Assembly: GCA_002269645.1 (NCBI GenBank)
Contig: NIVC01003339.1
Coordinates: forward strand, 39,402-103,401
Direction of reading: 5' to 3'
From: Macrostomum lignano
Taxonomy: Eukaryota
Length of the DNA stretch: 64,000 nucleotides
The first letter of the stretch is position 1. Each line of letters starts with the position of its first letter. The translations under genes and the position numbers were made by a program. Of the stretch, positions 21,516-56,041 are shown piece by piece. The notes below the pieces were generated by a model. The model saw only the letters and a list, made by a program, of their open reading frames with translations. It did not search any database and was not told the DNA's origin.

Positions 21516-23322
21516 CTAGTTTTCAGTTTCAACTTTAACCTCACATGTCGCCACACTGAGCCTCATTGACAATAGGTCGTTGCTGTCCTCACTAAACTGA
21601 TTCCTCAGCCAATCGACGTGCTCTTTCCGGTCCTGGCAGTACTGATGTAGCTTCTCCGAAATCTCCAAGTCCTCGTCACCGATTTCGTGCTCTATCCACA
21701 TCGCCAGTCGGTTTTTGTTGCTTTTAGTCGGCGCACGTCCAACGTCGAGAACTTTAAAAGCGTGCTTGGCGCTGTACTTGGCATTCGGATCGGCTCTCTT
21801 GTTGGTTCGATCGTCAATAGCATTCAGCACTTTCTCTACATGGTCGCATAGTTCCTTCACTTCGTCCAACCTGTCAGAGTCATCGCAGTTGAATCTGAAC
21901 TCGTAGAATACGCAGCGACTTTTCAAGGAGACGCTGCTTACGATAGCGCTGCCGCTGTGACTAGTGCTGGCACCGTCGCTAGCTTGATGCGGATGCAGCG
22001 GAACGGCACTTGTATTGGCATGAACACTTCGTTGTTTAGGCTGGTTCACCTGTTTCTCCTTCATCAGAGCTGTTAGCTTGGAGTTGAGCATCGTCGCCGA
22101 TGTACGCTTCGTCGCGTCGCAGGTCAGTAAGTTGTTCAAGATCAGACGAATCGAGTCCAACACAGGCTTGTGAGCATCGTATTTGAACGGACTTTTACCG
22201 ATGTCAATGCAGTGTTGATCTACACAGATCTGTCCTTTTGAGTCTTCCTGTGAGCTAAACGGCGTCATATACTTCGCAGCTCCTGCGGTGTCAGACGGAA
22301 TACAGCATCGCACATCACCACACCAAGGGAGAAGCAGTCGGATTTGTTGTTGTAGCACCTGCTGACAGCCTCTGGCACCCTCCACAGCTCGGTACCAACT
22401 CCAGGCGTTAATTCATGGCCGCTGCAGTCGTCAGGCAGGTACCTACTGCAGTTAAAGTCGCACAGTTTGCAGTCGAGGCTGCCGTTGAACATCAGAATGT
22501 TTTCACTCTTCACGTCTCGGTGCAGCAGCTTGCTGCCGTGCATGTAGCTGAGAGCGTCCGACAGCGGTACCATCCAACGCAGGCAGTGGGCCAAGCTGTA
22601 GTGATCCTCTCTGCCAGTGCCCTCAATGTCCGTTGGAAATTGGCGCTTCTCAGTTTCGAAGTGCAGCAATTTGTACAAGCTCAACTCGCCGGCCTCCATG
22701 ATATACAAGCACTGGCTGGAGTGCATGCCAAAGGCTGAAACTATGTTAGCGTGGTTGCACGCTTTGAGAAGTCTGTACTCATTCAAACAGGCTTTGGCAG
22801 CGTTCCTAGGCATTAAGAATTTCTTAACTGCAACGTAAGGAGTTTCATTAATGCGAAGTGTAGGTAATGATTGGCCTACTTTAGTCCGATCGCTGCACAG
22901 TTTCACTTTGCACACATGTATTCGGCTAGTTTTGTACAGATCCTCGGCATCGTTGAAGTTCAGACAGTTCGTGTCTATGCACGTGCCAGATTCCTCTGTG
23001 TTGCAGGTCTGCGTTGACTCGCTAGACAGACTGTGCTGCAATCGAACTCGAACCTGCGTTTATCGGGAAATAATTATAGCTAAATAAATAGAGATATCAA
23101 TACATTCACTTTACCGAAATCCATTCAAGCAGATCATGATGTTATAAAAAAATACATTAAATGTACATGCACATGTATACATGTATATCTGAAGAACAAT
23201 ATTTGCCATACTGTTAAGTTGCCCATGTAAAATTAACTTTGATGCATTGACGATTTAACTAACAAGTATCTCTCAGTTGTTTTAAGGCTTACCATTGCTT
23301 CAGATGACGTCGACATTTTCAT
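21516..23322 (-). CDS. TAK1/TKL-like protein kinase 1 with an unrecognised C-terminal domain; exons 23322-23293 and 23053-21516; one frameshift at about 22296
   Basis: VAVKK, NEYRLL, YSLAHCLRWM..ALSYMH, HRDVKSEN, KLCDFN, GTELWRVPE, KSDCFSLG. Exon 1 is 10 codons ending at gtaag (phase 0, matches the acceptor). Adding 1 nt after TTC CG joins the two ORF-track frames (VFR-SDTAG). Confidence 0.8.
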
Positions 23323-23529
23323 AGAAACAAGGATCAAGCAGGGCGGCTGCTCTTATAGGAACTGTTCTCAGATTTTTGTGCTTTATAGTTGGGTGGGTAG
23401 GCTTTTTGTAAGTGTGTTACTTCACTTCATAGTCAGTTGCTTTTCTTTTAATAATAAGTTTGCTCAATTGTCATCGGAATAAAAGAGACTTTATGGCCTA
23501 GATTTTTTAAATAAACTACTCGTATATAA

Positions 23530-24740
23530 TTTTACACGAGTTATGAGTATAGCTGAGCATTGAGAGTAGCATACAAGCGCGTAGGTACCCGGCAAGACCC
23601 GTATTTTCTAGCATCCCTCCTTTGAAAGAAGAGCCAGAGAAAAAATACTCTGCTATTGTTTGGAATTTTTATAGCCACTTAGCTGAAATCTGTCTGCAGA
23701 GAAGTGAGAAGCAGCAAATGCCTCATGTGACTTGCTTGCAATTTAACTGGATGAGTAATCGCAAAAATTCAGTGCACAAGTACTCGCGTTTCATTCTAGA
23801 TCTTTCAGCTTTTCAGTTTTTCATATCATATAAAGACGAAACAGCGTAAATACTAAAAGACTCAACTTCAAGCAACACAACAACACAAAGTACTTCACCC
23901 GCCAGCCACAGCAGTGGCCAGAAAGGGGGAAGTCAGAGAGCGCGTCTCTGGGCCATGGCCTCAGAAAGTCACACTCCCCCGGCTTGGTCCGGGGCGCTAG
24001 CATCGGTCAAAAGCCTGTCCGGATATCTCGCGGTTCGCCCTTGGCCTCGCCTGCGCGGTCCTTGCAGCTTGAGCAGCAGCACTTCGATCGTTTTTCCCCT
24101 AACAGACTGCTAGGGCAGCGTTGTGGGGTGCCGCAAGAGAGAGAGAGCACTTCGTGCAGCGGCTCAGGGCAGCGGCCCTCCGACCGGATGACGTGGCCAG
24201 CCAGTCGAAGTCGCCGCCCGCGCAGCAGGCCAGAAGGCCGCATCGGGCGTGCCCTCGTGTAGAGCGCGGCGTTGGTCTCGCTGCCTGGACTGCTGCGCAC
24301 TCCCACCGCCACACGCAGCATGGCCGCTCACGCGCAGCGTCCAGCTGCCTCTCCAAGGCATCCGTCAGGGTCTAGGTCTCGGCGTGGACCCTAAACCCGG
24401 AACCCTGGACCCTAACCTCAAGATATATGTACTAGTAATAAGATTAAACGAATTCCGAAGACAAGCAATTTTATTTGAATTTAGGCTCTGAAGAATCTGC
24501 ACTGATGTATATCTGTCAGTCAGACAATGTATTGTAAGATTCTAGATCATTAGGTGATGTCACAACAATCACGAAAATCAGATTTCCGACTAGAATACAC
24601 TCTTGGTTAGTCTGCGAACTAGTTTCTTATTGTTATCAATCTCTCTAAGTTAGATTTAATTTAGAAGTCGATGTAAAAGGGACTAGGACTGGATTGCATA
24701 TTGACCATGCAGGGACAGGGACAGCCTTATTGCTAGGGGT
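23530..24740 (-). promoter_or_regulatory. Upstream region of kinase 1, homologous to 34165-34810 upstream of kinase 2
   Basis: Shared blocks in the same orientation relative to each kinase, e.g. gctgaaagatctagaatgaaac and gcga(t/c)tactcat(c/t)cagttaaa(t/c)tgcaagcaag(t/c)cacat. Interrupted here by an RTE fragment. Regulatory function is inferred. Confidence 0.5.
24005..24365 (-). mobile_element. RTE-clade non-LTR retrotransposon 3' fragment
   Basis: QLDAA..MLRVAVGV..TNAALY..LRGRRLRLAGHVIR resembles the post-RT C-terminus of RTE LINEs; frameshifted. Confidence 0.65.
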
Positions 24741-26174: not shown

Positions 26175-29100
26175 TTATGAATTTAATCCAAACTTTGCCA
26201 GCAAGTCTTGCAGCTCCTTTATACTTTGTTCCAATTTTTCGATTTTATGTTCAACATCCTCCTTTAGTTTTTTCTTTGTTTCTTCGTCCAGTTTGTCTTC
26301 ACTGATGTATTTCCATACGTCCACAGACATTCGCTTTAGCATGAAGCGTATTATCGCTTTTGGAATGCTAGTGGCGATTCTAGTTACAACAAACCCGATG
26401 TATCTGTGACATACCACGCTTAGGGTTTGCTGCAAGACTTCAGTGGAGTCACTGCTGGTTGCTCCAGTAACTAGCGGAACAATTTCTTTTATCAAAGGTT
26501 CAAGGAAGGGCCGAAACTCAGCTGGAAGCCTGGCGGTTGCTCCCTTTTCGATCAGTTTATTTATCAATTTTTTGCCATCTTCCTGAGCTCTGCAAAATAA
26601 TTTACCATTTTAAAATGGGTTATAAGTCCGGCGTTTGTAGTAGCATTCGCATAAATTGAAAAAGATAAAATCACAGTTTTAAACTCTGAGTTTCAATCTA
26701 AATTTAGCTCGTAAAAACTCAAAGAATGGACTGAATACCATTTTTTTTCTATAAATATATCTCTCTAAAACTGACGCGATGTTTGTCTGTTTGTCCGTTT
26801 GTCTGCGTGTTCGATCACTGAGAGATAAAAATATTAATAACTAAACATACCTTTTTGCTTCCTATTTGGTTTTTTCATCATTCAAATTGGTGCGTGGCCG
26901 TCAGCAGTCTAACGTGGCAGCGTAGTAGAGATTCTGCATAGACAAACCATAGAAAGCCATAGATAACAGAAATCAATTTGGTTTTACCTGCGAGCAATTT
27001 GGGCCATAGCTGGAAGGCATAGCTAAAGCAAAGAGAGAACCATATGCTAAAATCCGTCTGGTGGACAGAGAGAGGATAGTGAATGCATACATGACGTGAA
27101 ATAAACCTAATTGGTCGCGAAAAAAAAACAAATTGCTCGGTGACTTCAGTTCTTAGTCTATGGTGAACATGACTTCTGCTGGGCTATTTTCAACGCACCT
27201 AATTGGACGCAGTAAAACCAAATAGGAAGCAAAAAGGTATACTAATATGCATACGAGTTTTTTACTTATTGAAGTCGGCCATAGACAATTGCAGCGAACG
27301 GCTGCCGTGCGTTTCACCCATGGATGAAGGAATAGAATGGATCGCTTATCTGAAAACAAGTCTATGGCCAAGATTTCCTAAAAATTTTGATATCCCCCCA
27401 TGAATTTCATTGGATGCTGGAATTTAATAATAGTCCACCCTAACTTCTTAATGGCTGAAGCTTTTACTCGGGGAAACGCTAATTTCTTTCCCTTAGCCGT
27501 CGTGGCCCAGAGGAAGAAATCAGTTACGAGACTAATAGATGTCTAACGTTAATCGTGACTTTGGAATTTCCCTCGCGTACAAGCTTCAGCCAGTAAGAGC
27601 TTAGGGGGACTATTATTCCTTTTTACGCTCTATTTGATAAAAACTGCAACCAATTTGGCCACGGCTCAGCCTGACGCAGCCGCAGCAATTTTCCATAGAC
27701 AGCCACCGCTAGCGGCAACCAATTTGGTAAAAACTGCGAGCTATTTTGCCAGCTTGAAGATAGCAGCTGGGAGCCCCTTCGCTGAGCGGCCTTGAGTCCT
27801 CGCCGTCCAGATGTTCACCCCAAACTCGTCCATGAAGATGGTGTTCACCTGGCTTCCCTCGTCCAGCATCCATTCAACGTGCATCCTTCGCGCCTCCTTT
27901 GTAACAGGCATGTTCCAGTTCACAGGTACCTGGCGCAGTAACTTCAGGGTGATGAGGCGACCATCCAGAGCACGACTGATAGTGGTCAGACTCACGTTGG
28001 CAACGTCATTGTGTTGGTGCAGCAGGTGCTCTCTCATTTGTTGCAGCGTCGCAGTAGGTTGACCACTTGACCTTCGACGAATTGAACAATGGTGTCCACC
28101 ATAGCCTCCGTCAGCGCCATCCTCTTCACTCCTCCTTTTGGCAGAGTGCCAACTCTACCAGTTCGTTCATACGTGGTCACGATGTTCCTCACTGTCGGTT
28201 TCTTCATCCCCATCATTCTGCCAAGCTCTCCCCAGTCGTCGCCACTCCTGTACGCTCTCACGATTCGCTCTCGATCCAGCTGACTTATCTTTTGGTACGG
28301 CCCACGATTCGCCATCAGAGCAGCTGCTATCTTCAAGCTGGCAAAATAGCTCGCAGTTTTTACCAAATTGGTTGCCGCTAGCGGTGGCTGTCTATGGAAA
28401 ATTCTATGTCTATGGTCAGGCTGAGCCGTGGCCAAATTGGTTGCAGTTTTTATCAAAGGTACCTTTTTACGTTCTATTTGATAAAAACTGCAACCAATTT
28501 GGCCACGGCTCAGCCTGACCATAGACATAGAATTTTCCATAGACAGCCACCGCTAGCGGCAACCAATTTGGTAAAAACTGCGAGCTATTTTGCCAGCTTG
28601 AAGATAGCAGCTGCTCTGATGGCGAATCGTGGGCCGTACCAAAAGATAAGTCAGCTGGATCGAGAGCGAATCGTGAGAGCGTACAGGAGTGGCGACGACT
28701 GGGGAGAGCTTGGCAGAATGATGGGGATGAAGAAACCGACAGTGAGGAACATCGTGACCACGTATGAACGAACTGGTAGAGTTGGCACTCTGCCAAAAGG
28801 AGGAGTGAAGAGGATGGCGCTGACGGAGGCTATGGTGGACACCATTGTTCAATTCGTCGAAGGTCAACCTACTGCCTCTCACGCCTCTCAAGTGCCTGCG
28901 CTGGATCAACCATTCCCAGACGTACTTCAATCGGTGCTTGAATGCTGAGGACATAATGTTCTGACTTCGTGCATGTATTGTTAACATTCTTTATCGTTAT
29001 TGTTATGCTATTGAGCTGCTATCTTCAAGCTGGCAAAATAGCTCGCAGTTTTTACCAAATTGGTTGCCGCTAGCGGTGGCTGTCTATGGAAAATTGCTGC

Positions 29101-32100
29101 GGCTGCGTCAGGCTGAGCCGTGGCCAAATTGGTTGCAGTTTTTATCAAATAGAACGTAAAAAGGTATATATTAAATTCCATTAGCCACTGAAATTCATGG
29201 GGGGGGAGAGAATATCCCAATTTTTAGGAAGCCTTGGCCATAGACTCGCTTTTAGATGAGCGATCCTTTCTATTCCTTCATCCATGATTTCACCCCATTT
29301 CAACACGCTTATGCTAGCTGTAATATACAGCGTAGTGTAGCAGCGCAACCATATAGGCTTGCTTACATTGCGAGCGTACTTACATTTCAAAAGTTATTCT
29401 GGGCCCATTTTGTGAAGCGCTTGTACATGTTTTCGGATAGTTTAGCAGGTTGGTCAGATTTTCTAAATACCTATTCGTACTGCACGAGGAACTTACTGTT
29501 GATTTGCTTCCTCATCGACGTCCAAGCTGCTTTGATAGAAAGCTGCCTCCATGCTCATAATGACATCGATTTTGCTAGCTACATCCCGTCGGAGCACCGG
29601 AAGGTATTCGCAAATCATCGTATTGATAGACTTCTCAAGTGGCTCATGGCTTGCCATGCACCTTTTCACTTCAGTTTGAATTCGATCTTGAATAATACAT
29701 TCGATATCACTAATAAGTCGCTCAATAGTCGGTTTCAAAGCCTTTAATATGTGCTTTTTGACGACTCTTTTTAGGACAGGGAAATAGTGTGGCAGGCCTT
29801 TGAACTCTTCGCCAACTTGATCCTCGCACTCCTCATCGAGAATAGACTTCACTGAAAGTGTGACAAAGATTCAGGGCCGGAATTAGTATAAATAAAGCGA
29901 GCTAAGAATGCAACGGTTTTAACTTATAAAACTTCAGGTCTTACAATGATTTGGCTCTAGAACTTCCTCGGCAATCGTCTTTAAATCCTGCTCGAACTTG
30001 TTCCACTTCATCTTGCACTCACTGAAGAGTTCATTCTTCTTTTTGCGACAAGTGCCGGTAAGTTGTTCCTCAAGCTTCTTATTAAGTTTAATGAAGAGAT
30101 TCTTCAACTCTGAATTAGCACCATCATTCTCGTCTTTAAGCTTTTCCAACTCTTTGGCCTCGTCTCTCCACAAGTTCTGGAGTAAAAAAAGGACTGTGAT
30201 AATATAAATTAACATATTTTTTATTCAGCAAGAAAATAATTTACCAAAAGTTTTGAACGAAATTCCTCTTTCCTTGGCCTTAAAATTCGATACATGTTTT
30301 CCGCTAGGTGACTGATGAGCGCATCGAGGCCAAGTTTTGATTGCGGTTGGTTTTGCCAAAAAGATTGCCGCTTGAAGAAATCCGTTTCCTCGTCAGATGA
30401 GTACCTGCCCGTTTTTGAGTAGCAATGGACAGCAAACGCATCTCTATCTCTTAGCATATCCGGCACCTTCTGCTGTTTGTTCTCCGCAAGGTTATCGCAG
30501 TGAGTCAGCACGAACACGGTCCGTTTAAACTCCGGGTCAAGCCTCTTTGCAAAGTCATAACCCTTTGAAGTATCAATGTCGTTGACTGCCTTCAAAACGA
30601 CAACCATCAGTATGTTGGGTTTGTTAAGTTTTTCTCTCAGGGCAACCGTATTTTCGTCGTCATCTTTCATGTCACTGTGATTGAGTTAGATTACTAAAAA
30701 AGATGCGTAATTAAACTGATGAAATCTGTGCAGCAACAATTGTCAGAAAATTAAATAATTAGTGCCTCTTAAAGCCAGGGGCGTCTACCACAGTCAGATT
30801 AGGACGATCTGGCCCGCTTACTCTTATATTGAGGACTGAGTTCATAGAAATATTCTGTCCTGGGAACTTTTCGTTCATGATGTCTTTCAACTTCGATGAA
30901 AAGTCCTCTTGAGATTCCACGTTGATTGATTTTCCGTCGAAGCTGAAAAATATTTGATGGATGCACATATAAGCTCGACCAAATCGTTGTTTACACTGAA
31001 GATGCTTATAAAAAACTTTTTTTACAATAAGTCAGTAACAGTAACTGTGCTGCAGCGTTTTCCATCCCGATTTAACAAACTGTTAGAGCTTTTCTTACGA
31101 GCGCCCTGCCTCAACCAATGAACGAAATTTAATCTACAAAGAATTGATTTCATGATAAAATCCTTTGGGAAAGCCAATATAAAAACCAAGGACGATTTAA
31201 CTACAAGCAAGACAGAGGCTTCACTTCTCGAACGATTCCCGCTCTCCGTTTTTATCGCAATCTAGATAGCATCTGTTTGCCAACTTCTGTAATTTTCTCC
31301 GCGCCAGTCTTTTAACCATTTGAATTAGAAAGCTGTCTATGAAACTTCTAGCTATCCAACACAAAAGAGTTGAAATTATATTGAAAAGTGAATAAAAATA
31401 GTTCCTGTGACCGGTGAAGGAAGTCCTGCTGCTTACGATGCATGGCCCTTGGTACCGGGGCTACTGAAAAAACTGATCTGATACCCCCGTTTATGAAGTG
31501 TACTTTGTTCCCTGGCGGTTTCATGCCTTGTTGTTGTCGTAAAGTTTAAGTAAATACGTTATTGACTTCCAATTTTGTAAATTTTATCACGTAATATCAC
31601 GCAACTGCAGCAAAATTGTTGTGAACCAAAATCACTCACGTCTCAATCGTGGCATGTTCTGTATCCTTGCATCGAATACTTAGCCTGATGAGACATTTCG
31701 TACAGGTGCCTTCCCCTTTAGGAAGCTTCACTTTTGCGATCGCCTCGAGTACGGTCGACTTTCCCTCGGACTGGTCGCCGAGCACTACAATCTCGGGTAG
31801 GTCGATCTCGCTGCCCAGCTTCAGCTTGTCGATGGCATCGAGCAGCAGGACGTACTGTTCGCCCACGTCATTCAAACTAAGTTTCTGTCTCCCGGAGCCC
31901 CGAGGGATGCGGGTATTTTGGCTAGTTGTCCTCATTTGACTTGAAGTTTGAACCAGTTGCTTTGGAGATGGACTGGGCGGCACTGAGAGTTCTGTTGTGT
32001 CAAAAAAGTATGCAATATTTTTAATATTTTGCAAGTGCAAAGTTTGAATTGCAACTATTAACTACTTATATTTAAATCTTATCTGAAACATTTCTTTTAC

Positions 32101-32565
32101 ATATAATTTTCCATTATGTGTACAATAATTTTCTGTATTTGTACAACAGACTGGCACACAAATCCATCGATAGAGTGATAAGTAAAACTTGAAATGTATG
32201 GAAGAAGCAATCATTACAGTTTGATATTGCAGTCAAACAAAAAAACTAGTGATATTAACTAGAATGAGTAGGCTTTTACGACAATACTTTTGCGTACATC
32301 GCGTAGCTATGGACACGGATAGCTGTTTATACCGTTTTGTGTACTTTTCGAACTGCAAGCCTATAATTTAATTTAAACTTTAATTTTTACCAAGCATTTT
32401 TTAGATTTTCTTACCATAGCTGGCATCGGGTTGGTATCCATGTAAGCCGGTGGATGAATTTCGCGAAGGAAAATCTGCTGGATCGCTGTTGCCTGAGCGT
32501 GGTAAAGTTTTAAGCAATTCTTCCATTTTTTCTTCCATTTTTTCTTTGTTAGAATCGCCTGCCAT
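26175..32565 (-). CDS. Mx-like dynamin-family GTPase A, about 703 aa; exons 32565-32415, 31991-31640, 30942-30766, 30674-30245, 30176-29945, 29851-29497, 26589-26175
   Basis: LPEIVVLGDQSEGKSTVLE (G1), GTCTK (G2), LTVVDAPG (G3), RTVFVLTHCD (G4), GED YIGFVVTRIATSIPKAIIRFML; no PH domain. Exon sum 2112 nt with consistent phases, but this needs a GC donor after 30766. Confidence 0.85.
27426..27617. mobile_element. About 190-bp MITE with TIRs of about 37 bp
   Basis: aataatagtccaccctaacttcttaatggctgaagctt pairs with aagcttcagccagtaagagcttagggggactattatt. Confidence 0.75.
27618..28459 (-). mobile_element. Tc1/IS630-type DNA transposon, deletion derivative A
   Basis: TIRs of about 150 bp; ORF from ATG 28315, MANRGPYQKIS (HTH) ..IFMDEFGVNIWTARTQGRS, then an abrupt join to the 3' TIR; an 8-bp duplication at about 28065 causes a frameshift. 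Confidence 0.85.
28462..29164 (+). mobile_element. Tc1/IS630-type DNA transposon, deletion derivative B, head-to-head with A
   Basis: TA at 28460-61 and 29165-66; ATG 28619 with the same N-terminus as A, joined to the transposase C-terminal end (TPLKCLRWINHSQTYFNRCLNAEDI*), then the 3' TIR. Confidence 0.85.
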
Positions 32566-34164: not shown

Positions 34165-34810
34165 ATGTAGAACCCCCCCCCCCCCTGCTAAAAGACACGT
34201 CCCAGTCCTCACATGGTAAATGCGATCCAGTGTCCCTTTAATCGACTAGGACTTTGACATGGACAGGAAAAAGACACTGGTTAGCTGGTCAGTTCAGTGC
34301 AACTTCTACATAGTCGGAAACCCGATTTCTGTTCTCTATCAGCTAAAAAAACCCAGTTGCTCGCTGCATCTTTGCTACCTTTGGGGCTGACAGGAGTGGG
34401 AGGTCAGAGCTTAAGTTATCGATTTCTATAGACTGAGGACCTATAGTCAAAGGCTAAGAGATCGGCTTCATCAATTATATGATTTTGATGTAAATAATGA
34501 GTCTGAATTCTACTAAAAGTACTTGTCGTAGGTTCGTTGAACTTAATAATACGAATACACAGGGCCGGATTACGAGTTCCAATACATGTAGTTACTTTGG
34601 TTCGTACTTATATAAAAAAGAATTAAAGGCTGAAAGATCTAGAATGAAACTGAAGTACATTTACGTGCGCTGCATTTCTGCGACTACTCATTCAGTTAAA
34701 CTGCAAGCAAGCCACATTACGCTCGTATGCAGCTTTTTGTAACTTTTATTTGCTTGTAAAATACTTGGTCAATGCTCAATTCTCCGCTAGACTCGCAACT
34801 CATGTGAAAA
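34165..34810 (+). promoter_or_regulatory. Upstream region of kinase 2, homologous to 23530-24740; contains TATATAAAAAAG at about 34608
   Basis: Block-wise similarity to the reverse complement of the kinase 1 upstream region. Function is inferred. Confidence 0.5.
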
Positions 34811-35435
34811 TCATTTTGAAAACCAAGCTGTAAAAGTTTTTAGAGCGAACTTCTTTTGTATACGCTTGGAGGAGCGCACACGAGGCAGACCTCGATAAGA
34901 ATCCCACAGAGGCCACAAAATGCATTCATGAACAGCTGTGGTTAAATTTTCGATTCAGACAAAAAGCACGGCTTTTGCTCCCTGCACCATACAGCTAGAG
35001 TTTGAAGAAGTCTTCAGAAGAAGTCAGCCAGCGATTAAATTTCTTGCTCCACTACACGCTGCCTTGAATCTGTGTGTTTCCACTCAAAGAACACTTAATC
35101 GTAAGTTAACACTTAACACTTAACCGCTAATATATCCGGCCTGTAAAAACCACTTAAGTGTATTCGTCATAAGATGTCAACTTACAGATAATAGTTTAAG
35201 AAGGGAAATTGCTTGTTGGGGGCGGCGATTTAGTTCTCGGTTCTCACTAGGTTGTACACTACGAGTATGTATGCATATACATGTACTCAGAGTTGGCCGG
35301 ATTAAAGCTGCCACTTATTGATCCCTGGTTTCGTGAAAACTTAAAAAATATTGCTTAGTGGCAACAAGTTGATATCCTGTGAATCTCTTTACTCTAACTC
35401 AGAACCGCATTTTGCACTTATGTGAATTTCAGGGA

Positions 35436-36984
35436 ATGCCGCAAACGGAGTCCTCTCAACCCGGGTAAGTGCGAACAACAGTCTTGATAGAAAATTTTCA
35501 CTATTATATGCCGTAATTAGTTCAAACTTATATAATTTTAGAGTTGAAGCCAAAGATGATATTAAAAACTACGTAAATTTTTATTCCAAACCAATTTACC
35601 ATGACGAAAATTACGGCGGTGTATACAGGGGAACCATGAAGACGAACTGGACCGAAATAGGACAGATTCAACCGACACTTAATATTGGTCACAAAGTTGT
35701 GGTCAAGAGCTGCTACTCGTACAACCGAGAAGATTTGAAAAAATTTCAACAAGCATATGAAAGGCTTAAGCTATGTTCGCATCCTCACGTAGTCACCGTT
35801 TTCTTTTCTGGCATCTACAATACTCCTGTTGATGTGGATGGTACACATATTTTAATGATGAACGCTTTCGTCATGGAATCCGGTGAGCGAAGTTTAGCTG
35901 CTCTTCTGGACAACGAAAAGGATTTTCCTACTGATGAAGAGGGATTAAAAGAGGGGCATCTCACGATGGCTCACTGCATGAGTTGGCTAAAGCAGATTGC
36001 CGATGCTCTGTCCTACTTGCACAGTGAGGAAATTATCCATCGTGATTTGAAGCCAAGAAATATTTTATTATTTCACGCATCGACCATCTGCAAGCTCTGT
36101 GACTTTGACGACAGCAGCAAGATCTTGTCGAAAATGACATCCGAAAAGGGAACTGGAAATTTCATGGCTCCTGAAGTTGCAAAGCGTCCGAGTAAGAATG
36201 AGACGAAGCGAGCGTACACGGAAAATTGTGACTCTACTCATTTGGTGTGACTGTTCTAGCAGTCATTTTTCGATCGGGAGATGCTGAGAACATTCCAGAG
36301 GCAGTCTCTGGGACGTCAGTCTCTGAGAAGTCTCCAGGACCCTCAACATGCGTCGCACGTTTCGTCACGGAGACTGAATCGTCCGAAGTTGATTTGCAGT
36401 CATGCAAATTCGACTACGAACAGCATAAAAGTGAATTTGAATCTTTAAGAAAGATTTTAAGCCACGTACTTCAGGCCGATTATAAAGAACGACGACTGAG
36501 TGCTCCAAAGATCTACTCAATTCTTCGACAGCATGCGAAAGGCATGGCGCCAATTTTAATTTCAAAGGGCACCGAAAATGCGGGTTCGCAGGAAACGGAT
36601 AAATCCGTTTTAAGAAAAAGCCACACTGTCTGCTACATCGCTTCACTTCCGAGCAAAAATTCAGAATTTACTGAAGACCAATTGAAGCAAGTTCAGAATG
36701 TTCTCTCTGCCGTGGGAGATCGGGTTAACAGCAAAGTTGACAAAACTGCTAGCAAAGACACAAGACATGAATATAAATGTACTTTAGTACCAACTCTACC
36801 CACCGAGCTCATCATTGAGCACAACATGGGCAGCACCAACGAATCTGCTAGTAGTGTAGCGGAATACTGCAAAACAGATCATCAACATCTTGAGTGGCTG
36901 GCAGAACAGTTCAAAGAGGATAACGACGAAACGCTGAGAAGCATTAAGTTTTCAGTTTTCAATCCGAAAAATACTGAGCAGTAA
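35436..36984 (+). CDS. TAK1/TKL-like protein kinase 2; exons 35436-35464 and 35542-36984; one frameshift at about 36233
   Basis: Degenerate Gly loop YHDENYGGVYRG, VVVK, LTMAHCMSWLKQIADALSYLH, HRDLKPRN, KLCDFD, GTGNFMAPE. Adding 1 nt after GAC gives CDxYSFGVTVL. Phase-2 intron; same 10-codon first-exon design and C-terminal domain as kinase 1. Confidence 0.82.
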
Positions 36985-37409
36985 ATTTTTTCAAGAGAAA
37001 TCGAAATTGTGATATTTTACTGATTTTTTGTTAATAAAACGTTTGTTTCCTTCGTTTGTGATTTCTGTATAAGCTTTTTCTCTGGTGGAAACATTCGTAT
37101 CATTTGAAACTTTTTCATCTTATACTGTGCTGTTATCACGAATGGGTAGTGGCAATTCGTAGCGGTACTCCCAGCCCGATTTCGGAATAATCAAACCGAT
37201 TTTGACAAAGTTGGTTTCATTCTAAAAACTGAATAGACTACTCAAAAATGACCCGAATGTCATGAAAGACGGAGCACAAGTTTAAGTTTTTCAGAAAGTT
37301 CAAGGAACTGATTTTAGTGTGTTTTAAAAATAAAATAAAAAAATTCAACCTCGTGATGCAGCAAAGTTTTATTCCTGGCAGGATTTTATTGATTTGCGCT
37401 TGATATTCT

Positions 37410-37645
37410 GCACTTGTTATTCTGCATTTGTTATTCTGCCTTGTTATTCTGCACTTGTTAGAAGAATAACAAGTTATTCTGCCTTGCTAGTCTGCACTTG
37501 TTATTCTGCACTTGTTTTTCTGCCTTGTTATTCTGCACTTGTTATTCTGCACTTGTTTTTCTGCCTTGTTATTCTGCCTTGTTATCCTGCACTTGTTATT
37601 CTGCACTTGTTATTCTGCCTTGTTATTCTGCAGTTGTTATTCTAA
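37410..37645. repeat. 13-14-bp tandem repeat (gttattctgcactt / gttattctgcctt)
   Basis: Direct. Confidence 0.9.
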
Positions 37646-39350: not shown

Positions 39351-39351
<1 letters not shown>

Positions 39352-39412
<61 letters not shown>

Positions 39413-41010: not shown

Positions 41011-43117
41011 TCAATAGTTTCCATAAATTTCCACTTCGCACAGAGCTACAGCCAGATTTTGTAGATTAACAATACTTATTCGACTGCCGAAGGCGTTGCA
41101 GGTGAAGTTGGCCACAGAGAACGGTACAGTCAGGCTCACCCGGTTACACTCGACGCCGTCCACCTGCAAGGAAAATTTGTTGAGCCGGTCAGCGCAGCAG
41201 TCCTGCCTGTTGTAGATGGTGACGTGGGAGATGAGAGCTGACCTATCCAGGGAAGCCTGCCACCAGGTACTGGCAACACCTTTCAAATTCGTGTGACTGC
41301 ATGAACGCGCTGAGTATCTCTGGTTGGTATTGCCGTCAATAGCTTTGGCGCAGACTCCGTCGAAAGCGTTGGAACTTTGAATGCAACTGTCGGTCTTGAG
41401 CTTCGTTGGATCATCTGCAATGCAGCGGGAAAGGAATTCAATTGGTCAATGGAGAGATGGCAAAGTTACATGTAAACCAAGTTTACCATTCTAAATTCAA
41501 TAAAATATATTAATCAGATACACAAGACACGGCACATCTTGGTAGGCGCCCCTGTCTCTTGGTGGGCGCCCCTGTCTCTTGGTAGGCGCCCCTGTCTCTT
41601 GGTGGGCGCCCCTGTCTCTTGGTGGGCGCCTGTCTCTTGGTGGGCGCCTGTCTCTTGGTGGGCGTTTGTCTCTTGGTGGGCGCCCCTGTCTCTTGGTGGG
41701 CGCCCCTGTCTCTTGGTGGGCGCCCCTGTCTCTTGGGGGGTGCCCCTGTCTCTTGGTGGGCGCCCCTGTCTCTTGGGGGGCGCCCCTGTCTCTTGGTGGG
41801 TGCCTGTCTCTTGGTGGGCGCCCCTGTCTCTTGGGGGGCGCCCCTGTCTCTTGGTAGGCGCCCCTGTCTCTTGGTGGGCGCCCCTGTCTCTTGGTGGGCG
41901 CCCCTGTCTCTTGGTGGGCGCCCCTGTCTCTTGGTGGGCGCCCCTGTCTCTTGGTAGGCGCCCCTGTCTCTTGGTGGGCGCCCCTGTCTCTTGGTGGGCG
42001 TTTGTCTCTTGGGGGGTGCCCCTGTCTCTTGGTGGGTGCCTGTCTCTTGGTGGGCGCCTGTCTCTTGGTGGGCGCCCCTGTCTCTTGGTGGGTGCCTGTC
42101 TCTTGGTGGGCGCCCCTGTCTCTTGGGGGGCGCCCCTGTCTCTTGGTAGGCGCCCCTGTCTCTTGGTGGGCGCCCCTGTCTCTTGGTGGGCGCCCCTGTC
42201 TCTTGGTGGGCGCCCCTGTCTCTTGGTGGGCGCCCCTGTCTCTTGGTAGGCGCCCCTGTCTCTTGGTGGGCGCCCCTGTCTCTTGGTGGGCGTTTGTCTC
42301 TTGGGGGGTGCCCCTGTCTCTTGGTGGGTGCCTGTCTCTTGGTGGGCGCCTGTCTCTTGGTGGGCGCCCCTGTCTCTTGGTGGGCGCCCCTGTCTCTTGG
42401 TGGGCGCCCCTGTCTCTTGGGGGGTGCCCCTGTCTCTTGGGGGGTGCCCCTGTCTCTTGGGGGGTGCCCCTGTCTCTTGGTGGGTGCCCCTGTCTCTTGG
42501 TGGGTGCCTGTCTCTTGGTGGGCGCCCCTGTCTCTTGGTGGGCGTCTGTCTCTTGATGGGCGCCCCTGTCTCTTGGTGAGCGCCCCTGTCTCTTGGTGGG
42601 CGCCCCTGTCTCTTGGTGGGCGCCCCTGTCTCTTGGTGGGTGCCCCTGTCTCTTGGTGGGCGCCTGTGTCTCTTGGTGGGTGCCCCTGTCTCTTGGTGAG
42701 CAGGATCTGTGCATTGATCGATAGGATCGACTTTTTCGCTACCAACTGATAGTTATTGACATCTTTCATGCTTATAGAAAATACGTATTATCGTACGGTC
42801 CCTTGGCAACCTTACCAAGCTGTCGTGTGTAAACAATCTCCCGGCTCCACGCTCTCCCAGTCGTCATATTTGTAGAAAGCCGTTAAGTTGAACAGCCGGC
42901 ACAGAGCCCGCAGCCAGCTGAATCCGAAACAGGCCGACCTCAGCGAGCAAAGCTCGGCGCATTTCAGCCTCGGGCAGCCTGAGCAGGACTCCATCGCTGG
43001 AGGAGTTGCCACGCCCCGCTTGCTGATTGACTCGAACTTCACAGGCCGATCCGCTGTGGTAGCCGAGACTGCAGCTGCTATGAGCAACACCTGTAGAACT
43101 AGTTGATTTCCGAGCAT
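41011..43117 (-). CDS. Secreted PAN/apple + F-type lectin (fucolectin) gene 1; exons about 43117-42816 and 41414-41011; junction phase unresolved
   Basis: Signal peptide; C..CAELC....CFGFSW....CRL (PAN); AIDGN, SCSHT, WWQASL, IYNRQDCCADRL and LCEVEIYG (FTP domain with the fucose-binding His..RxDx4R motif). Confidence 0.78.
41538..42700. repeat. GC-rich 20-bp minisatellite (cttggtgggcgcccctgtct, with 18-bp variants) in the lectin 1 intron
   Basis: Direct; about 60 units. Confidence 0.97.
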
Positions 43118-46115: not shown

Positions 46116-46912
46116 TCAGTAACCGTAGATCTCAACTTCGCAGATAACGAGATGTTCACTCAGCTGATTGACAACTCGAACAGCGCTGCCGAAAGCGTTA
46201 CAGGTGAAGTTGGCGATGGAGAACGACTCCGTCAGGTCCACTCGGTTGCACTCAACGCCATCAACCAGCAAGTTGAACTTTTTGAGCCAACTAGCACTGG
46301 AGAGCCGGTTGTAGATGGTGAGGTAGGCCACGAAAGCTGGAGCGGCCAGCCGCGCCTCCCACCATTCGCCGATGCCTTGGACAGTGGCGCTGTAGACGGT
46401 CTGGTCCCTGTTGCCGTCCATAGAGATTGTGCAGTAGTAGCTCAGGTAGGTATTGCTGTGCTGGCAGCTGGAAATGTTCAACTTTGTTATGTTGGTGGGC
46501 GGAGAACCTGTGGGAATGAGTTGCCAGAGTTGTGAATGAGCTTCAAGGTTTGCCAGACTAAGATAAAACAGAACGCGCATGTGACGTTTCGTTCCTTACT
46601 GGTAGCAGCTGTCGGCTCTTCCATCTTCTTGAACACCTCACAAGGTGGCGAGCTCAGCCAGGTGCCAGAGAAGGCGCTCAAGTCGAACAGCTGGCACAGA
46701 CTCTGCAGCCAGGAGAAACCGATGCAGCCGGCTGTTTGAGCACACTTCACCGAGCAGTCCACGGTGCTGCTGCCAGTCACAGATTTCATGCTGACAGGCA
46801 TCGATGAGCTTACGGAACTCACGATTTCGAAGGTGAAGTCTGAAGCCGCTGGTGAACTGGCAGTCAGTAGCAGCAGAAGGGCTAGAAAGTGCGCAGCTGT
46901 TTGGCAATACAT
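46116..46912 (-). CDS. Secreted PAN/apple + F-type-lectin-fold gene 2; exons 46912-46600 and 46507-46116
   Basis: Signal peptide MYCQTAAHFLALLLLLTAS; DCSVKCAQTAGCIGFSW..CQL; MDGN, WWEARL, IYNR, VDGVECNRV..NFTCNAFGS..ICEVEIYG; phase-1 GT-AG intron closes in frame. Confidence 0.85.
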
Positions 46913-50600: not shown

Positions 50601-50675
50601 AATTTTCATCATTTAGACGGCTTAAATGCTTGCTTGCTTAATTTACAAGAGAAAGAAAAAATGCCACTAAATGTG

Positions 50676-50758: not shown

Positions 50759-51266
50759 TAAGTGTGTCTCTGAGGCTCTGTATTTTCCACCTAAGAACTG
50801 ACAAATTACCTTTTTTGTGCACAAGTCCCACATTTCCGTTGAACTCTTCCGCTCTGTAAGTACTCGCTAAAGCGAAGTTCTACATTTAAACAATTACACA
50901 AAGTGCAGCTGCAGACTCTTTCTTAGACAGGCAAGTTCGTAGATCTAGAGATATTCAGTCTATTGAAAATGGCTATGAGTTTGCACATCTGCGCGGCTAG
51001 TAAAGAAAATACTGAGTAGACAAGTAAGTACCGTTTTATTTTAGGGTCAGATTACAATTGAATTTTCCATGCTGTCATGAGTAAGTACTTATTTATAGCC
51101 TCGGGCAGACATTACTGCAGACGTTCGCTTATTTAAACCCGAGTTTATCTAAAGCCTAGTTGAAACCGAAAACTACTGCATCAAAATAATAGTAAAAGTA
51201 ATAGTAATAGTAAAAGAGCTGAATGTAATTTTCCGGCAGACATTGCAATTTTCAGCTGTTGTCAGA

Positions 51267-54200
51267 ATGAATTCTGTAGGAAATTCAGGTTTGCTCGATG
51301 TGGATGATCTGCTTCCGCGACGCAGGTCTTCTCAGAGCCAGGGACAGCAGCAGCAGCAACAGGAGCAGCAACAGCAGACACCGCCAACTCGCGGTGGCCT
51401 TAAAGGCCCAGATCCACCCCAGAATTTGCACAAGTTCAGTTTCAAAAGCGTCGACGAACAGTACGTCCTGCTGCTCGATGCCATCGACAAGCTGAAGCTG
51501 GGCAGCGAGATCGACCTGCCGGAGATTGTAGTGCTCGGCGACCAATCCGAGGGAAAGTCGACCGTCCTCGAGGCGATTGCGGGAGTGAAGCTTCCAAAGG
51601 GTGATCGGACTTGTACGAAATGTCTGGTTAGGCTGCGTATTCGAAAAAAGCCTGAGGTGCAAGCCACAATTGAGTAAGAGATTAAATATTGTATTTCTTG
51701 CTTCTTTGCTGAGCCGAAAAATGCAAAATTTTGTGAAAGAATTCACAGAAATTTAAGCATGCTCGTGCCGCACTAATCCAGATTCGATGGCACTTCAACC
51801 GACGTGCACGACCAAGCGGACTTTTCGACAACTTTGAAGAAGATCATGGACGAACACTTTCCTGACCAGCAGGTGTCAATGAGAGCGGTCATCGACATCA
51901 AGATCAGCGGGCCAGCCCGTCCGAACCTGACCGTGATGGACGCTCCTGGATTCAAGAGGTATTGACCTTTTTGATTAACAGTAGAATGTAGCGATGAAAG
52001 CGTCTGCTGCTGATAGAGACAAAATAGACAGCTAAGAAAACTTAGTGGTTGAATTATAATCCGCATGTCTTTGTGAACGGTCATCAGCCCATTGGGTTGA
52101 AGCAGAGTCAAGTAGAATTGACTCAATAGTTAGTAATATTAAGCGCCCCGATCTGTGATAGAAATTCGGAGTCGCCCGAAGTAATTCAAAAGTCTGCTAA
52201 TCTTTGATTAGGGCCCATGAATTCTGTTGGCTTGAGATTCACAGCAGCAAAAGTTGTATTGGTAAAGGGAATCGTCAGGTTAGGCATTGAAATCTTGAGC
52301 AACATTCCTAAGTTTCCGACCCAACCGGAGAAACTGTGTACAAAGACGGCTGAACGTCGGTTAGCTCGTATCACTTAGTTGTTACATGGAAGGCATATAC
52401 ACGTAGACAAGAAAGAAGTAACTGGACGCATACAAACCAACAATGGTCAAAGTTCAAATCATTGGAGATTAGACAGCGATGGGATTTCTCTGACTATTTT
52501 CTGATAACTACAAAGGACATGAACATGAAACAGGAAAATGTAAAGTAATCATTGCTATTCCGTCCGATTTAAAATGATCCTAGGATTCTACACAAACTTT
52601 TGGTTTTACCTGAACGTGATGTCTCGACGATTCTAGTTGATTGGGGTAACAAGTAAAATATCAATGGCGGTCAGGTTGGCCCGCAGTTTTACTTCGGGTT
52701 TTATTTAAATCCTTAAGGCGACGTCCTCTTTTTATTTACCAATTAGACCGTAGTTGCTATAGTTAGGAATTCCTGATATTACTACGATTTTCGTTAGATT
52801 GTAGTACCTATTGATGAATTCGCCTAATATCTTCAATTTGAGTTTCCCTGAAATATAACTGCATCACAGTGACATGAACGAAAATGATGAAAACATGACG
52901 GCCCTGAGAGAGAAGTTGGACAACCCGAACGTGGTGATGGTTGTCGTTCTGAAGGCCATCAACGACATCGAGGCTTCTCGTGGTTTTGGCTTTGCAAGCC
53001 GGCTGGACCCCGAGTTTAAGCGGACCGTTTTCGTGCTGACTCACTGCGACAATCTAACAGACAACAAGCAGAAGATGGTGACCGATATGCTCAACGAGAG
53101 ACACGCTTTCGCCGTTAACTGCTACTCTGAGAACAGCGCATATTCTTCAGAGAAGGAGAAGAAGTTCTTCAATGAGCAGCTGTTCTGGAGAAGCCAACCG
53201 CAGTTCAACCTCGGTGTCGATGCCCTCATAAGTTATCTGGCTGAGCATATGTTCCGAATTTTGGAGCCACGAAAAGAAGAAATTCATTCGAGAGTTTTGG
53301 TGAGGCTTTTTCTGTTACCGAACAAAACAGAGATTGGAAAACTTTTTTACCTCAAGGGCCAGATAAAGAATATAGTTCATGGATGACCAGGTGAGAGACG
53401 AAAGAAGAGGGAATGGAAGAAAAAGGAGGAGATAAGAGATGAGAGAAGAGATGATGCAATTGTGAAGTTTCAAAAGATAGAGAGCCGATCCCAAAGTGTA
53501 AAATTAGTGACTGGGTAAGACACTTGTATTACTTTTCAGAAACTGTGGACAGCTGAAGACACCGAGTTGAAAAAGCTGACAGCCGAACAAGAGTATGCAG
53601 GGCGCGAGTTCAAGCGCTTCATTCGCAACGTGAACAAGGAGATTGAAGAGCAGCTGACTGGATCGCATCGATCTGAGAAGAATGAGCTCTACTCTGCATG
53701 CCGAAGGCAGTGGCAAAACTTTGGCGAGAAGATCAATAAAGTTGCTGAAAGCGTCATAAATGACCGTAAGTTATTGAGTTGAACAATGATCATATCGCTG
53801 TATGGATGGAGCTTTTGATCAAGCTCATTGCAGTTTCCTCATGGCAGCCATATCGAAACCATAATTTTACAGAAGCCCTGCTTCAATTGTGTTCGTCGTG
53901 GCCACTAAAATTGAGGCTCGTGAACAAAAATTTTGTTGAAGTTTGTTGAAGTGAATGCACAAAGCTAACTTAACTAATGTTGCCAGACATTCTGCTGAAA
54001 CCTCTCTAATAATCTTTCTATTCTTAATACTATTTGTAATAAGCAAACATCCGTCCCCATACTTATTAAATTTCAGTGAAGAAAATCGTCAAGGATGAAT
54101 GCGAAGACCAACTCGGCCGGGAAACCACTAAACTTCCAAACTATTTTCCAGTTAAAATTCGAATCGTCAAGAAGCACATCATTGATGCTGTTAAACCAAT

Positions 54201-56041
54201 AATTGATCAACTGATCGGAGAGATTGAATGCGTCATCCAGAGCCATATTCAAGACATCGTCAAAGAGCAGCTGAAGAATCGCGAACCGTTAGAAAATTTT
54301 GTTAACGACAAGGTCAGGGAGTATCTTCCCAATCTTAGGCGAGACGTGTCTAAAAAGATTGAAATGATTGTCAGCATGGAGACGATCGTTTACGAGTACA
54401 AGAGCCCCAGAGACGAAGCTCAAAAACAGCAGGAAGGGTAAGTCTCTAGCTTATAGCTACGTGGATATATAAGAGGTTTTACATATGGAGGGGCAGAGCA
54501 GATCAGTGGTAAAAGCATCTGGATCGGTTTTTCATTTGAGTCTTGTGTGTATTGGCCTGTGGGTTGTCGTAGGATTCACAACAATCAGGGGACTAAGCAC
54601 GGATGATGTGTTCCTTACTACCAAGACTTTCTTAGTAATCAAGGAACAATCACTTCTAGCTACTGCTAAGCAACCCAGAAATCAAATGAAGGTATCTATT
54701 ACCTTGAGTCTTGATCAGTAGAGCTCTTTCGGTGCGTTCTCGATCTCAATCAATTTAGACGTCTTGATTTAGTTGTTCTGGTCCAAGTTCCTTTTTACTT
54801 TCAACGAAGTCGTTTCCGGCCGGTATCTGTAGTTCGGACCAATCAGAAGCTTTGAATCAACAATGGGGATCCCTGCGCCGCGCTGCGGTTTCAAATAAGC
54901 CTTCTCCTTGTAGCAGTGACTCAATGCACTCTAGGTATAGCTCCGGTAATCACTGATAGTCTTCTAATGGCCATCAGGGTAGTCCTTCTGGAAGCTACAA
55001 CTAATGGAGTCTCAAATAGATTCAAGCACAACAATAATATCGAGTCGACTCTAAGACCTGGCGCAAATGAGTTAGGCTTACCGCAAGAACTCAGCCGAGT
55101 CTCGGTTGACTTGGTCTGAAGGAAATACCTCGACGACATGATTATTTTTTGCGTTATAAATGGTAAGGTGATTCATTGTTCGTTATACATAGTAACATTT
55201 TTCATAGTTTCCGTTAAAATAGCAACTTGACTCACGGTTTAAGTTTTGCTGCGCATGTTTGCATTAGTCTACTTATAGTAGCATTCTATGAATAGACAAC
55301 ATTTAACAATTTTTATGATTTTTTGTGGGAAGTAGAACACTCTACACGGAGAGTGTACATACCACCTGACAGTCAAGGGGCACCCTGTAGCACCCTGTGT
55401 GAGCGTGTGTATGAGGGCATGCCTGCGTGCCCTATTGACCCGCTTGTCTGTGCTCAGGGGTCAACGGAATGGGCAGAATTGCCTCAGGCGTTGGTTGTGG
55501 CCGATGTCGCCACAAGCGTTTACCTCGGGGTATCACAACCCTCCTGCATATTTGAATAACATTATTATTAATCATCTTCTTTTACTTTAATCCGTAACGT
55601 TTTGTTACAATTATTAACCGCAGAGCTCAAGGAGGGGAACAGGAAGAACAAGAAGAGACGGGACTCGTGGAGTCAGTAGTCCGGGAAGGTGCCGAGTTTT
55701 TCGCTTCTCCAGCTATGAAGCCTTTTGTGAAGCCTGCGTTTGATAAGGGCAAGCAGTTGTTAAAAGCAATTACCGATGATCCTGCGGATTTTCTGCAGAA
55801 AACTCTGCGCAGAGAGTGCCGCAGTTACATCAGGTTCGTGGAGAACAGACTGGCCAATAGCATTCCCAAAGCCATAATCACGTTCATGCTGAACCAGATG
55901 GCTGAGGACATCTGGGACTGCGTCGATGACGATGATATTGACGAGGAGACCAAGAAGCAGTTGAAGGCTGAAGTTGAGGAGAAGATTGAAAACTTGAAGA
56001 AGAGCACCGAAGAGCTGCAGAATTTGCTACTAAAGTTTTGA
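51267..56041 (+). CDS. Mx-like dynamin-family GTPase B, at least about 670 aa; exons (51267 or 51280)-51673, 51782-51958, 52870-53299, 53540-53765, 54077-54437, 55624-56041; 5' exon uncertain
   Basis: GDQSEGKS, TCTK, DAPG, THCD and GED SYIRFVENRLANSIPKAIITFML. All GT-AG introns with the same phases as GTPase A; the 177- and 430-nt exons are identical in size to those of A. Confidence 0.88.

Follow-up and report, generated by a model that had tools for sequence, protein, structure and literature searches.

Paired Mx-like GTPases, TAK1-like kinases and F-type lectin paralogues in Macrostomum lignano: a probable fast-turnover gene neighbourhood

Introduction

Fast-evolving immune genes are found in birth-and-death clusters, of which the vertebrate Mx1/Mx2 tandem pairs and the clusters of IRG/GBP GTPases and of NLR genes are examples. 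Mx-like dynamin GTPases, TAK1-like kinases and F-type lectins each have immune members in other organisms, and in the flatworm Macrostomum lignano two copies of each are found within 35 kb. They lie in a stretch of 64,000 nucleotides (referred to here as the window; positions 39,402 to 103,401 of contig NIVC01003339.1, assembly GCA_002269645.1), and were proposed from the letters of that stretch to form a lineage-specific sensor/kinase/effector defence locus. That proposal, the original prediction, was not borne out with respect to an integrated locus: a sister contig lacks one of the kinases, the reading frames of both kinases are broken, the three duplications are of unequal age, and partners were not found within 10 kb at three other loci of the Mx-like and lectin families. 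With a probability of roughly 60%, the region is instead a fast-turnover neighbourhood of three lineage-expanded families, and not a co-adapted sensor/kinase/effector unit.

Like this locus, the birth-and-death clusters have local duplicates as well as pseudogenes, carry insertions of transposons, and differ between near-identical copies in which genes are present. Each of them, however, is made of one family, whereas here three unrelated families are juxtaposed, with no evidence linking them. The main practical result is negative, in that the reading of a three-tier immune cluster is not to be carried forward on present data. New here are a divergent Macrostomum branch of Mx-like proteins with a T-H-C-D motif at G4, an orphan kinase of TAK1-like type whose C-terminal domain is novel, and an architecture that joins Apple and F-type lectin domains. 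M. lignano is a transgenic model tractable to RNA interference, and its two GTPases provide usable entry points to Mx-like function in an animal without interferon; other leads on families specific to this lineage come from the orphan TAK1-like kinases and from the expanded set of Apple/PAN plus F-type lectin proteins.

Gene Order and the Ages of the Three Pairs

All six homologous sequences were located by tblastn, Pfam and inspection of open reading frames (ORFs), and their order and strands are as had been predicted: K1(-), GTPase A(-), K2(+), lectin 1(-), lectin 2(-) and GTPase B(+) (Table 1). Further copies of the three families were not found elsewhere in the window when all of it was searched by tblastn. 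The claim that no housekeeping gene lies within these 35 kb was also upheld; between 21.5 and 56 kb, Pfam recognised no other gene, and only transposon remains and tandem repeats were encountered. K1 and K2 flank GTPase A, the first exon of which (32565) is head-to-head with the K2 exon (35567) across a gap of 3.0 kb, close to the 2.9 kb given originally. GTPase B has no adjacent kinase, K2 being 14 kb off and beyond the two lectins.

The pairs had been described as strongly diverged, and this applies to the kinases (~30% identity; 29-33% over their full length) and to the lectins (~40%; 39-42%), but not to the GTPases, which are 55% identical and share introns. On these identities, the three duplications are clearly not of one age. 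Gene order differs as well: on the minus strand, GTPase A is upstream of K1, whereas on the plus strand K2 is upstream of GTPase B with the two lectins between them. Given that both the pair identities and the gene order differ, a single duplicated kinase-GTPase unit is excluded as the origin of the arrangement.

In the reading favoured here, each pair would go back to a separate local duplication, the three having occurred at different times, and the working genes would be the two Mx-like GTPases and lectin 2. In their predicted architecture, the GTPases join a G domain and a bundle signalling element (BSE) to a helical stalk and lack a PH domain. By homology, they would self-assemble and may plausibly act against viruses, their target possibly being set by the hypervariable N-terminus together with an L4-like loop of the stalk. 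Lectin 2 would be a secreted Apple/PAN plus F-type lectin paralogue with a degenerate sugar site, while lectin 1 would have a canonical fucose-binding site in a gene of doubtful integrity that is destroyed in the sister copy; roles of either in binding glycans are presumed. K1 and K2, with their catalytic residues kept, would have been inactivated recently.

Table 1. Features of the window and their coordinates (position 1 is the first nucleotide of the window).
Feature	Position	Strand	Description and evidence
ERG4/ERG24-family gene	13257-16140	+	Flanking gene, outside the region under study; Pfam 147 bits
K1	21516-23041	-	TAK1-like kinase domain (~23041-22280) and orphan C-terminal domain (~22280-21516); Pfam Pkinase 91 bits
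Conserved non-coding block upstream of K1	23725-23853	-	~130 nt; tblastx, blastn, alignment
GTPase A	26175-32565	-	Intact Mx-like dynamin GTPase, 7 exons (~32565-32419, 31995-31639, 30947-30768, 30676-30245, 30176-29946, 29855-29493, 26591-26175); tblastn with P0002, splice junctions, Pfam Dynamin_N and GED
Tc1/Sleeping-Beauty-like foldback remnant	27614-29168		Last intron of GTPase A; Pfam HTH_SB and HTH_28, inverted repeats
Conserved non-coding block upstream of K2	34588-34717	+	Partner of the block upstream of K1; tblastx, blastn, alignment
Segment absent from NIVC01000034.1	34841-41367		Replaced by 674 bp of unrelated AT-rich DNA; blastn
K2	35567-36984	+	TAK1-like kinase domain and the same orphan C-terminal domain as K1; Pfam Pkinase 87 bits
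14-bp tandem repeat	37395-37643		18 copies of TGCACTTGTTATTC; between K2 and the mariner remnant
Mariner-type transposase	37869-38937	-	Degenerate, two overlapping frames; Pfam Transposase_1 and HTH_48
Lectin 1	41011-43117	-	Exon 1 at 43117-42815 (leader and PAN/Apple-like domain); F-type lectin exon at ~41413-41011
Minisatellite	41537-42698		Lectin 1 intron; 20-bp unit (TCTTGGTGGGCGCCCCTGTC), 59 copies; Tandem Repeats Finder
Lectin 2	46116-46912	-	Intact, 2 exons (leader, Apple/PAN, degenerate F-type lectin domain); identical to P0009
GTPase B	51267-56041	+	Intact Mx-like dynamin GTPase, 6 exons; NCBI model BOX15_Mlig010126g3
CRAL-TRIO gene	starts near 59.5 kb		Ordinary gene of the downstream flank

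A Sister Contig and Other Loci of the Same Families

A second contig of M. lignano, NIVC01000034.1, contains a copy of window 42355-64000 at 99.0% identity. Compared from window position 34467 onward, it presents the equivalent of 34467-34840, then 674 bp of AT-rich DNA, and then the window from 41368 onward. The segment that it lacks (Table 1) carries K2 and the 14-bp tandem repeat along with the mariner remnant, and takes in most of the lectin exon of lectin 1. Exon 1 of lectin 1 is present in the sister contig with an extra 1-nt deletion, and lectin 2 and GTPase B are conserved there. As hidden polyploidy, with a chromosomal duplication, has been described for M. lignano (PMC8629364; PMC10468722), the sister contig would be either an allele or a recent duplicate.

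Hidden polyploidy also raises the question of whether the cluster is only apparent, arising from mis-joined or chimeric segments in a repeat-rich genome. The window is situated at the very end of its contig, with positions 41165-64000 being 100% identical to the end of NIVC01003339.1 (GCA_002269645.1), and a perfect 391-nt palindrome (28067-28867) is the kind of structure that an assembly could create. An artefact of this nature is nonetheless highly improbable: an independent contig repeats the order of lectin 1 exon 1, lectin 2, GTPase B and the CRAL-TRIO gene at 99% over 21.7 kb, the same contig carries the sequence from upstream of K2 on the expected side, and an older gene model, made independently, is colinear with the exons of GTPase A.

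The neighbourhood, the conservation of which would be expected of a defence locus, was not conserved in the sister contig or at three other loci of M. lignano, as far as these were compared. At one lectin locus (L003) and two Mx-like loci (L004 and L005), no K-type kinase or partner from another of the families was detected within 10 kb on either side (tblastn, E<0.01). Locus L004 (NIVC01001310.1) contains the Mx-like gene Mlig021727g2 and a second GTPase-like gene approximately 5 kb downstream (10321-12571 and 17146-19227), the latter missing from the list of genes for that locus, and tandem duplication seems to be usual for the Mx-like family. Fusions to a kinase were absent from the eight Mx relatives of 900-1400 aa that were scanned; these had tandem dynamin modules or extensions instead.

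The Kinases K1 and K2

TAK1 (MAP3K7, of the TKL group of MAP3Ks) is the closest described relative of the two kinases among solved structures, with which the ranking was made, as opposed to a kinome-wide phylogeny. In this comparison with the PDB, TAK1 was clearly ahead for both, as anticipated by the original prediction, with 63.4 bits for K1 (next, Nek7 at 51 bits) and 71.5 bits for K2 (next, ZAK at 48 bits). The similarity is centred on the alphaE and catalytic-loop region (SW..Q...ALSYLH....IHRDLKP.N). K1 has the Lys of VAVK, the HRD and a DFN, and K2 has the catalytic Lys, HRD, DFD and APE. Unlike TAK1, however, both have a degenerate glycine-rich loop (with no recognisable GxGxxG in K1, and HDENYGG in K2), DFN or DFD in place of DFG, broken frames and no close relatives in the databases, and an orphan domain stands where TAK1 has its C-terminal TAB2/3-binding region and TAB1 docking, neither of which is recognisable. 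K1 and K2 are not orthologues of TAK1. A profile search using both of them against 5.8 billion proteins recovered only two remote kinases, and none from M. lignano.

The C-terminal 210-290 aa of the kinases gave no match in Pfam, and no sequence in the PDB matched outside the kinase domain, although the two copies can be aligned throughout (29% identity over 506 columns with the C-terminal domain included). A core of about 130 aa was predicted by AlphaFold2 (AF2) from the two sequences to adopt a beta-alpha-beta-beta-alpha-alpha-beta order, with a predicted local distance difference test score (pLDDT) of 70-87 in the core and a mean of 58. Foldseek found only generic ferredoxin-like dimerisation domains for this core, the best at a non-significant 1.2e-3. 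The modelled domain is probably ferredoxin-like, and no function can be read from its fold. Upstream exons that might supply signalling domains were sought as conserved ORFs between K1 and GTPase A and between GTPase A and K2, and none was found.

Neither kinase has a complete catalytic core in one open frame. In K2, the frame is broken by a 1-nt gap at 36232/36233 within subdomain IX (TGTGA-CTCTAC, YTENCD|LYSFGV), where K1 is continuous; in K1, the frame changes about 20 codons further on, near 22265-22300, where K2 is continuous. ORFs of 222-289 codons lie on either side of the single break in each. Short introns were considered in place of frameshifts and rejected: the only GT...AG that would restore the frame of K1 is 14 nt long, and K2 has no room for one. 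Since each kinase carries an independent break where the other copy is continuous, both are most likely recently inactivated genes, and hence putative pseudogenes. Neither kinase exon contains an ATG. This is uninformative and no defect, because the spliced leader of M. lignano itself ends in ATG and about 30% of the genes are trans-spliced (PMC8629364).

Upstream of each kinase, at 0.7-1.0 kb from its exon and in matching orientation relative to the gene, is a non-coding block of approximately 130 nt. The two blocks are 77% identical, far above the conservation of the kinase coding sequences (~30% at the amino acid level), and the block on the K2 side is kept in the sister contig though K2 itself is gone. 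No further match to them was found in the rest of the window or at loci L003-L005 (70 kb of other M. lignano sequence). The block contains no conserved ORF, belongs to no Rfam family and is not a tRNA, and its consensus fold is weak. Its candidacy as a spliced leader (SL) RNA was rejected with a score of 21 against 15.9 ± 2.8 for shuffled sequences, and no SL sequence was found in the window.

These features of the kinases bear on the possibility that K1 and K2 are intact genes, their breaks being assembly errors or strain-specific nulls, and that each acts with the neighbouring GTPase while the lectins are bystanders. The kinase might phosphorylate the GTPase, for instance, or signal downstream of its assembly. 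The flanking of GTPase A by the two kinases would fit such a partnership, as would the retention of the catalytic Lys, the HRD and the Asp of DFx with long ORFs beside each break, the common C-terminal domain with its predicted fold, the conserved block upstream of both, and the missing ATG, which trans-splicing makes harmless. Against this, two chance errors that hit precisely these two genes are unlikely, given that frame errors are absent from some 4 kb of coding sequence of the GTPases and from the other coding exons on the contig. In addition, K2 is deleted in the sister copy, GTPase B lacks an adjacent kinase, as do the other Mx-like loci, and the kinases have no relatives in the databases beyond the two remote ones. 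Such a pairing is consequently doubtful. Less likely still is its extended form, in which the orphan TAK1-like kinases, with the ferredoxin-like domain and the upstream block that they have in common, would be dedicated partners of the Macrostomum-specific Mx-like GTPases and their unusual T-H-C-D motif at a locus polymorphic for presence and absence, the breaks being errors or nulls, with the lectins recruited nearby. If true, this would be a flatworm antiviral kinase-GTPase module without a described counterpart elsewhere.

The Mx-Like GTPases A and B

Mx proteins were long regarded as vertebrate inventions linked to interferon. They are now described as ancient, and M. lignano has been credited with at least six of them (Langley et al., PNAS 2025; PMC11789081). 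The supplementary lists of that study include Mlig022940g2 and Mlig021727g2, and Mlig010126, the gene identifier of GTPase B, is absent from them; accordingly, GTPases A and B add a divergent branch to an already published expansion. No mention of Mlig010126 was found in a search of the literature.

GTPases A and B share with Mx proteins a dynamin-type G domain with the P-loop GDQSxGKS, the switch-I Thr and DxPG, a helical BSE and stalk, a GED signature, the lack of a PH or proline-rich domain, and a length of about 670-700 aa. In GTPase B, Pfam recognised Dynamin_N (93.8 bits) and GED (25 bits), and the G1 (GDQSEGKS), G2 (switch-I Thr) and G3 (DAPG) motifs are conserved. Dynamin_M was not matched in either GTPase, while the nearest paralogue, P0130, scored 50 bits for this family. 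At G4, the motif is THCD (residues equivalent to 286-289 of P0001, the product of GTPase B), such that the Asp is kept and the Lys of T-K-x-D is replaced by His. The M. lignano Mx-like proteins and three relatives from Logan assemblies (among P0130-P0139) are likewise without the Lys, having THCD/SHCD, TNCD or TCPD, whereas the Mx proteins of other animals retain TKxD. Its loss may affect nucleotide binding. Further differences from named Mx proteins are the low identity (17-22% in the alignment, 24-27% over matched stretches), the undetected Dynamin_M, and a neighbour-joining tree, poorly resolved and drawn with no bootstrap, in which A, B, P0130 and P0131 together occupy a long branch of their own.

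The original prediction had set an Mx-like identity for these GTPases against a housekeeping Drp1/Vps1 identity, and the former is the one favoured by sequence score, by predicted fold and by named relatives. Of the PDB entries compared with GTPase B by phmmer, Mx2 scored best at 94 bits (7.9e-26), followed by Mx1 (77), Mgm1 (66), OPA1 (51), Drp1 (49.5) and dynamin (42). An AF2 model built with 33 relatives (mean pLDDT 78) has the G domain followed by an all-helical region at residues 345-705, with no PH domain or beta-rich insert. Searched with Foldseek, this model found MxB (4whj) first and at full length (1.6e-24), and then dynamin, MxA and Drp1. Exhaustive searching of 1.84 billion representative sequences yielded only seven proteins below 1e-30, five of them from M. 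lignano (the query included) and the other two being a Logan-assembly protein and a protein of the oomycete Lagenidium. Beyond these, the first named relatives were an Mx3-like protein of a chiton (mollusc), a JGI "Mx1", an Mx2-like protein of a turtle, pig Mx2 and shrew Mx1. At least five further Mx-like groups exist in M. lignano, one locus being a tandem pair. An Mx-like nature of GTPases A and B is thus supported by sequence, predicted fold and named relatives, while membership in the Mx clade is not proven; a Drp1/Vps1-like identity is not supported.

The two genes are paralogous exon by exon, with introns at shared positions except for the extra 5' exon of A, all the exons of which are joined by canonical GT-AG junctions. 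GTPase A is about 97% identical to P0002 (UniRef A0A1I8..., a truncated 444-aa model), and P0001 (BOX15_Mlig010126g3, 706 aa) is 99% identical to the approximate, hand-built query for GTPase B; this gene has been called at this position and, in all, on two contigs. Of the six, GTPase B alone has been given a product by NCBI; for GTPase A and lectin 2 there are only UniRef models, and K1, K2 and lectin 1 have no annotated product in NCBI or UniRef.

Comparison of dN/dS (the ratio of nonsynonymous to synonymous divergence) among paralogues and alleles had been proposed as a check on the locus, and it was carried out for the GTPase paralogues. Over 653 aligned residues (55% identity), A and B have a dN of 0.35 and a saturated dS of about 1.8, giving a dN/dS of approximately 0.19 overall and 0.18 for the G domain by itself. 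The copies of GTPase B on the two contigs have no differences in 1950 bases of exon, against 1.04% in non-coding DNA. On these values, both GTPases are judged to be kept by purifying selection. Divergence between A and B is highest at the N-terminus and in the disordered, hyperdivergent L4-like loop of the stalk, the same regions in which vertebrate Mx paralogues differ most.

The Lectins

F-type lectins such as the eel agglutinin AAA (1K12), FBP32 of striped bass (3CQO) and SpX-1 of S. pneumoniae have in common a His ... Arg-x-Asp-Cys-Cys-x-x-Arg motif and a closing C-E-V-E-[IV]-Y-G strand, and both are found in lectin 1. Its domain scored 48.8 bits for Pfam F5_F8_type_C_2 (cut-off 27.8), and its matches in the PDB are exclusively F-type lectins, namely FBP32 (1.4e-24), Sm-hPAF, eel agglutinin 1K12 and SpX-1. 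The His/Arg/Arg fucose triad and the Cys-Cys pair are retained (SCSHT ... NRQDCCADR, as compared to SCTHT ... NRGDCCPER in FBP32). Judged by these residues, lectin 1 is a canonical F-type lectin domain with a predicted fucose-binding site. The description of the pair as fucolectins stands for lectin 1 and only in part for lectin 2, which scored 16.6 bits, below the threshold, and has lost residues of the sugar site; yet it is 48% identical to lectin 1 over the lectin domain. The fucose-binding His (within a deleted segment), the second Arg and the Cys-Cys are missing from lectin 2, and NRLS-SASW replaces the motif.

The M. lignano proteins differ from the F-type lectins named above in carrying an Apple/PAN-like domain N-terminal to their single lectin domain. 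Both begin with leaders that are hydrophobic by eye (MLGNQLVLQVLLIAAAVSA... and MYCQTAAHFLALLLLLTASS...), from which both are predicted to be secreted. Lectin 2 corresponds to UniRef A0A1I8GPM6 (P0009), a 234-aa "Apple domain-containing protein", and UniRef labels its paralogues "FTP domain-containing". The Apple/FTP lectin family of M. lignano comprises about 30 clusters at 90% identity, and one model, P0010, holds two tandem lectin units. After these paralogues, the next relatives are the fucolectins of fish and coelacanth. A search of the literature for F-type lectins together with Platyhelminthes found none.

The integrity of lectin 1 is doubtful on account of its splice sites, which disagree in phase: the donor (42813, TTG|GTAAGG) is in phase 2 and the only usable acceptor (41413, TTGCAG|AT) in phase 1, while both sites of lectin 2 are in phase 1. 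The mismatch points to a frameshift close to where exon 1 ends, or to a splice site that has escaped recognition. No database product corresponds to lectin 1, the closest entry being 57% identical. The minisatellite in its intron (Table 1) is approximately 818 bp shorter in the sister contig (L001, about 1207-1548). It was considered as a coding linker of lectin 1 and rejected; its period is not a multiple of three, the three minus-strand frames are open by virtue of composition, and its length varies by 818 bp.

A Defence Locus or a Fast-Turnover Neighbourhood

The most ambitious account of the region would have all six genes constitute a lineage-specific module of innate immunity, in which the lectins sense glycans, the TAK1-like kinases relay the signal and the Mx-like GTPases act, with selection on their co-regulation or co-inheritance. 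The confirmed family assignments, together with the immune members that these families have elsewhere, are what makes it attractive, and the stretch of 35 kb free of unrelated genes, the head-to-head arrangement of GTPase A and K2, and a pattern of turnover and presence/absence variation typical of immune clusters would all be in keeping with it. Nevertheless, it is unlikely. Nothing evident would connect lectins that are secreted with kinases in the cytosol, as the locus offers neither a transmembrane protein nor an adaptor; the kinases have broken frames and no annotation; the sister copy does without K2 and without the lectin domain of lectin 1; and lectin 2 is without its sugar-binding residues. 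Moreover, the other Mx-like and lectin loci compared have no partners within 10 kb, the three duplications took place at different times, and fusions of Mx to a kinase were not encountered among the relatives scanned.

The favoured reading of a fast-turnover neighbourhood has points to answer as well. Real, fast-evolving immune clusters likewise have tandem duplicates, pseudogenes and transposons and vary in which genes are present, so that turnover by itself leaves room for an immune role for the region. By rough reasoning, the occurrence of an Mx-like gene within 5-10 kb of an Apple/FTP lectin would not often be expected under a uniform model, and the absence of partners elsewhere was established at three other loci with 10 kb to either side of each. 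The conserved block upstream of the kinases hints that the two may have been regulated alike until recently, and absence from the annotation is weak evidence with regard to expression. Finally, the breaks in the kinase frames could be assembly errors, the contig being based on PacBio reads and containing a 391-nt palindrome that is possibly artefactual. Errors of this kind are possible but are not favoured, given that about 4 kb of GTPase coding sequence is without a frame error and that exon indels between the two contig copies are rare (only two over 3.5 kb, of which one falls in lectin 1, a gene in decay).

Flanking Genes, Transposon Remnants and Repeats

Within the last intron of GTPase A, an HTH fragment of Tc1/Sleeping-Beauty-like type makes up a perfect palindrome of 391 nt in the foldback remnant, with arms at 28067-28457 and 28477-28867 that are 100% complementary and separated by a 19-nt spacer. 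It is nested within inverted repeats of 155 nt, and would represent either a foldback transposon remnant or an artefact of long-read assembly. The remaining ORFs of at least 100 aa in and around the region gave no match in Pfam.

Upstream of the region, the ERG4/ERG24-family gene has an N-terminal exon rich in Arg, Ser and Lys (RSRSSSKSRSKSASP...) and looks like a housekeeping gene of the lamin-B-receptor or sterol-reductase type. At the start of the window, two ORFs on the minus strand (750-1884) appear by eye to encode cadherin-like repeats (...YAATVAQNSPIGTEVLRVAASE...) and, having no Pfam match at E<=0.01, may be the edge of a cadherin-type gene. On the other side, an (ATAG)n microsatellite of about 102 copies (56409-56814) begins approximately 370 bp past the stop codon of GTPase B.

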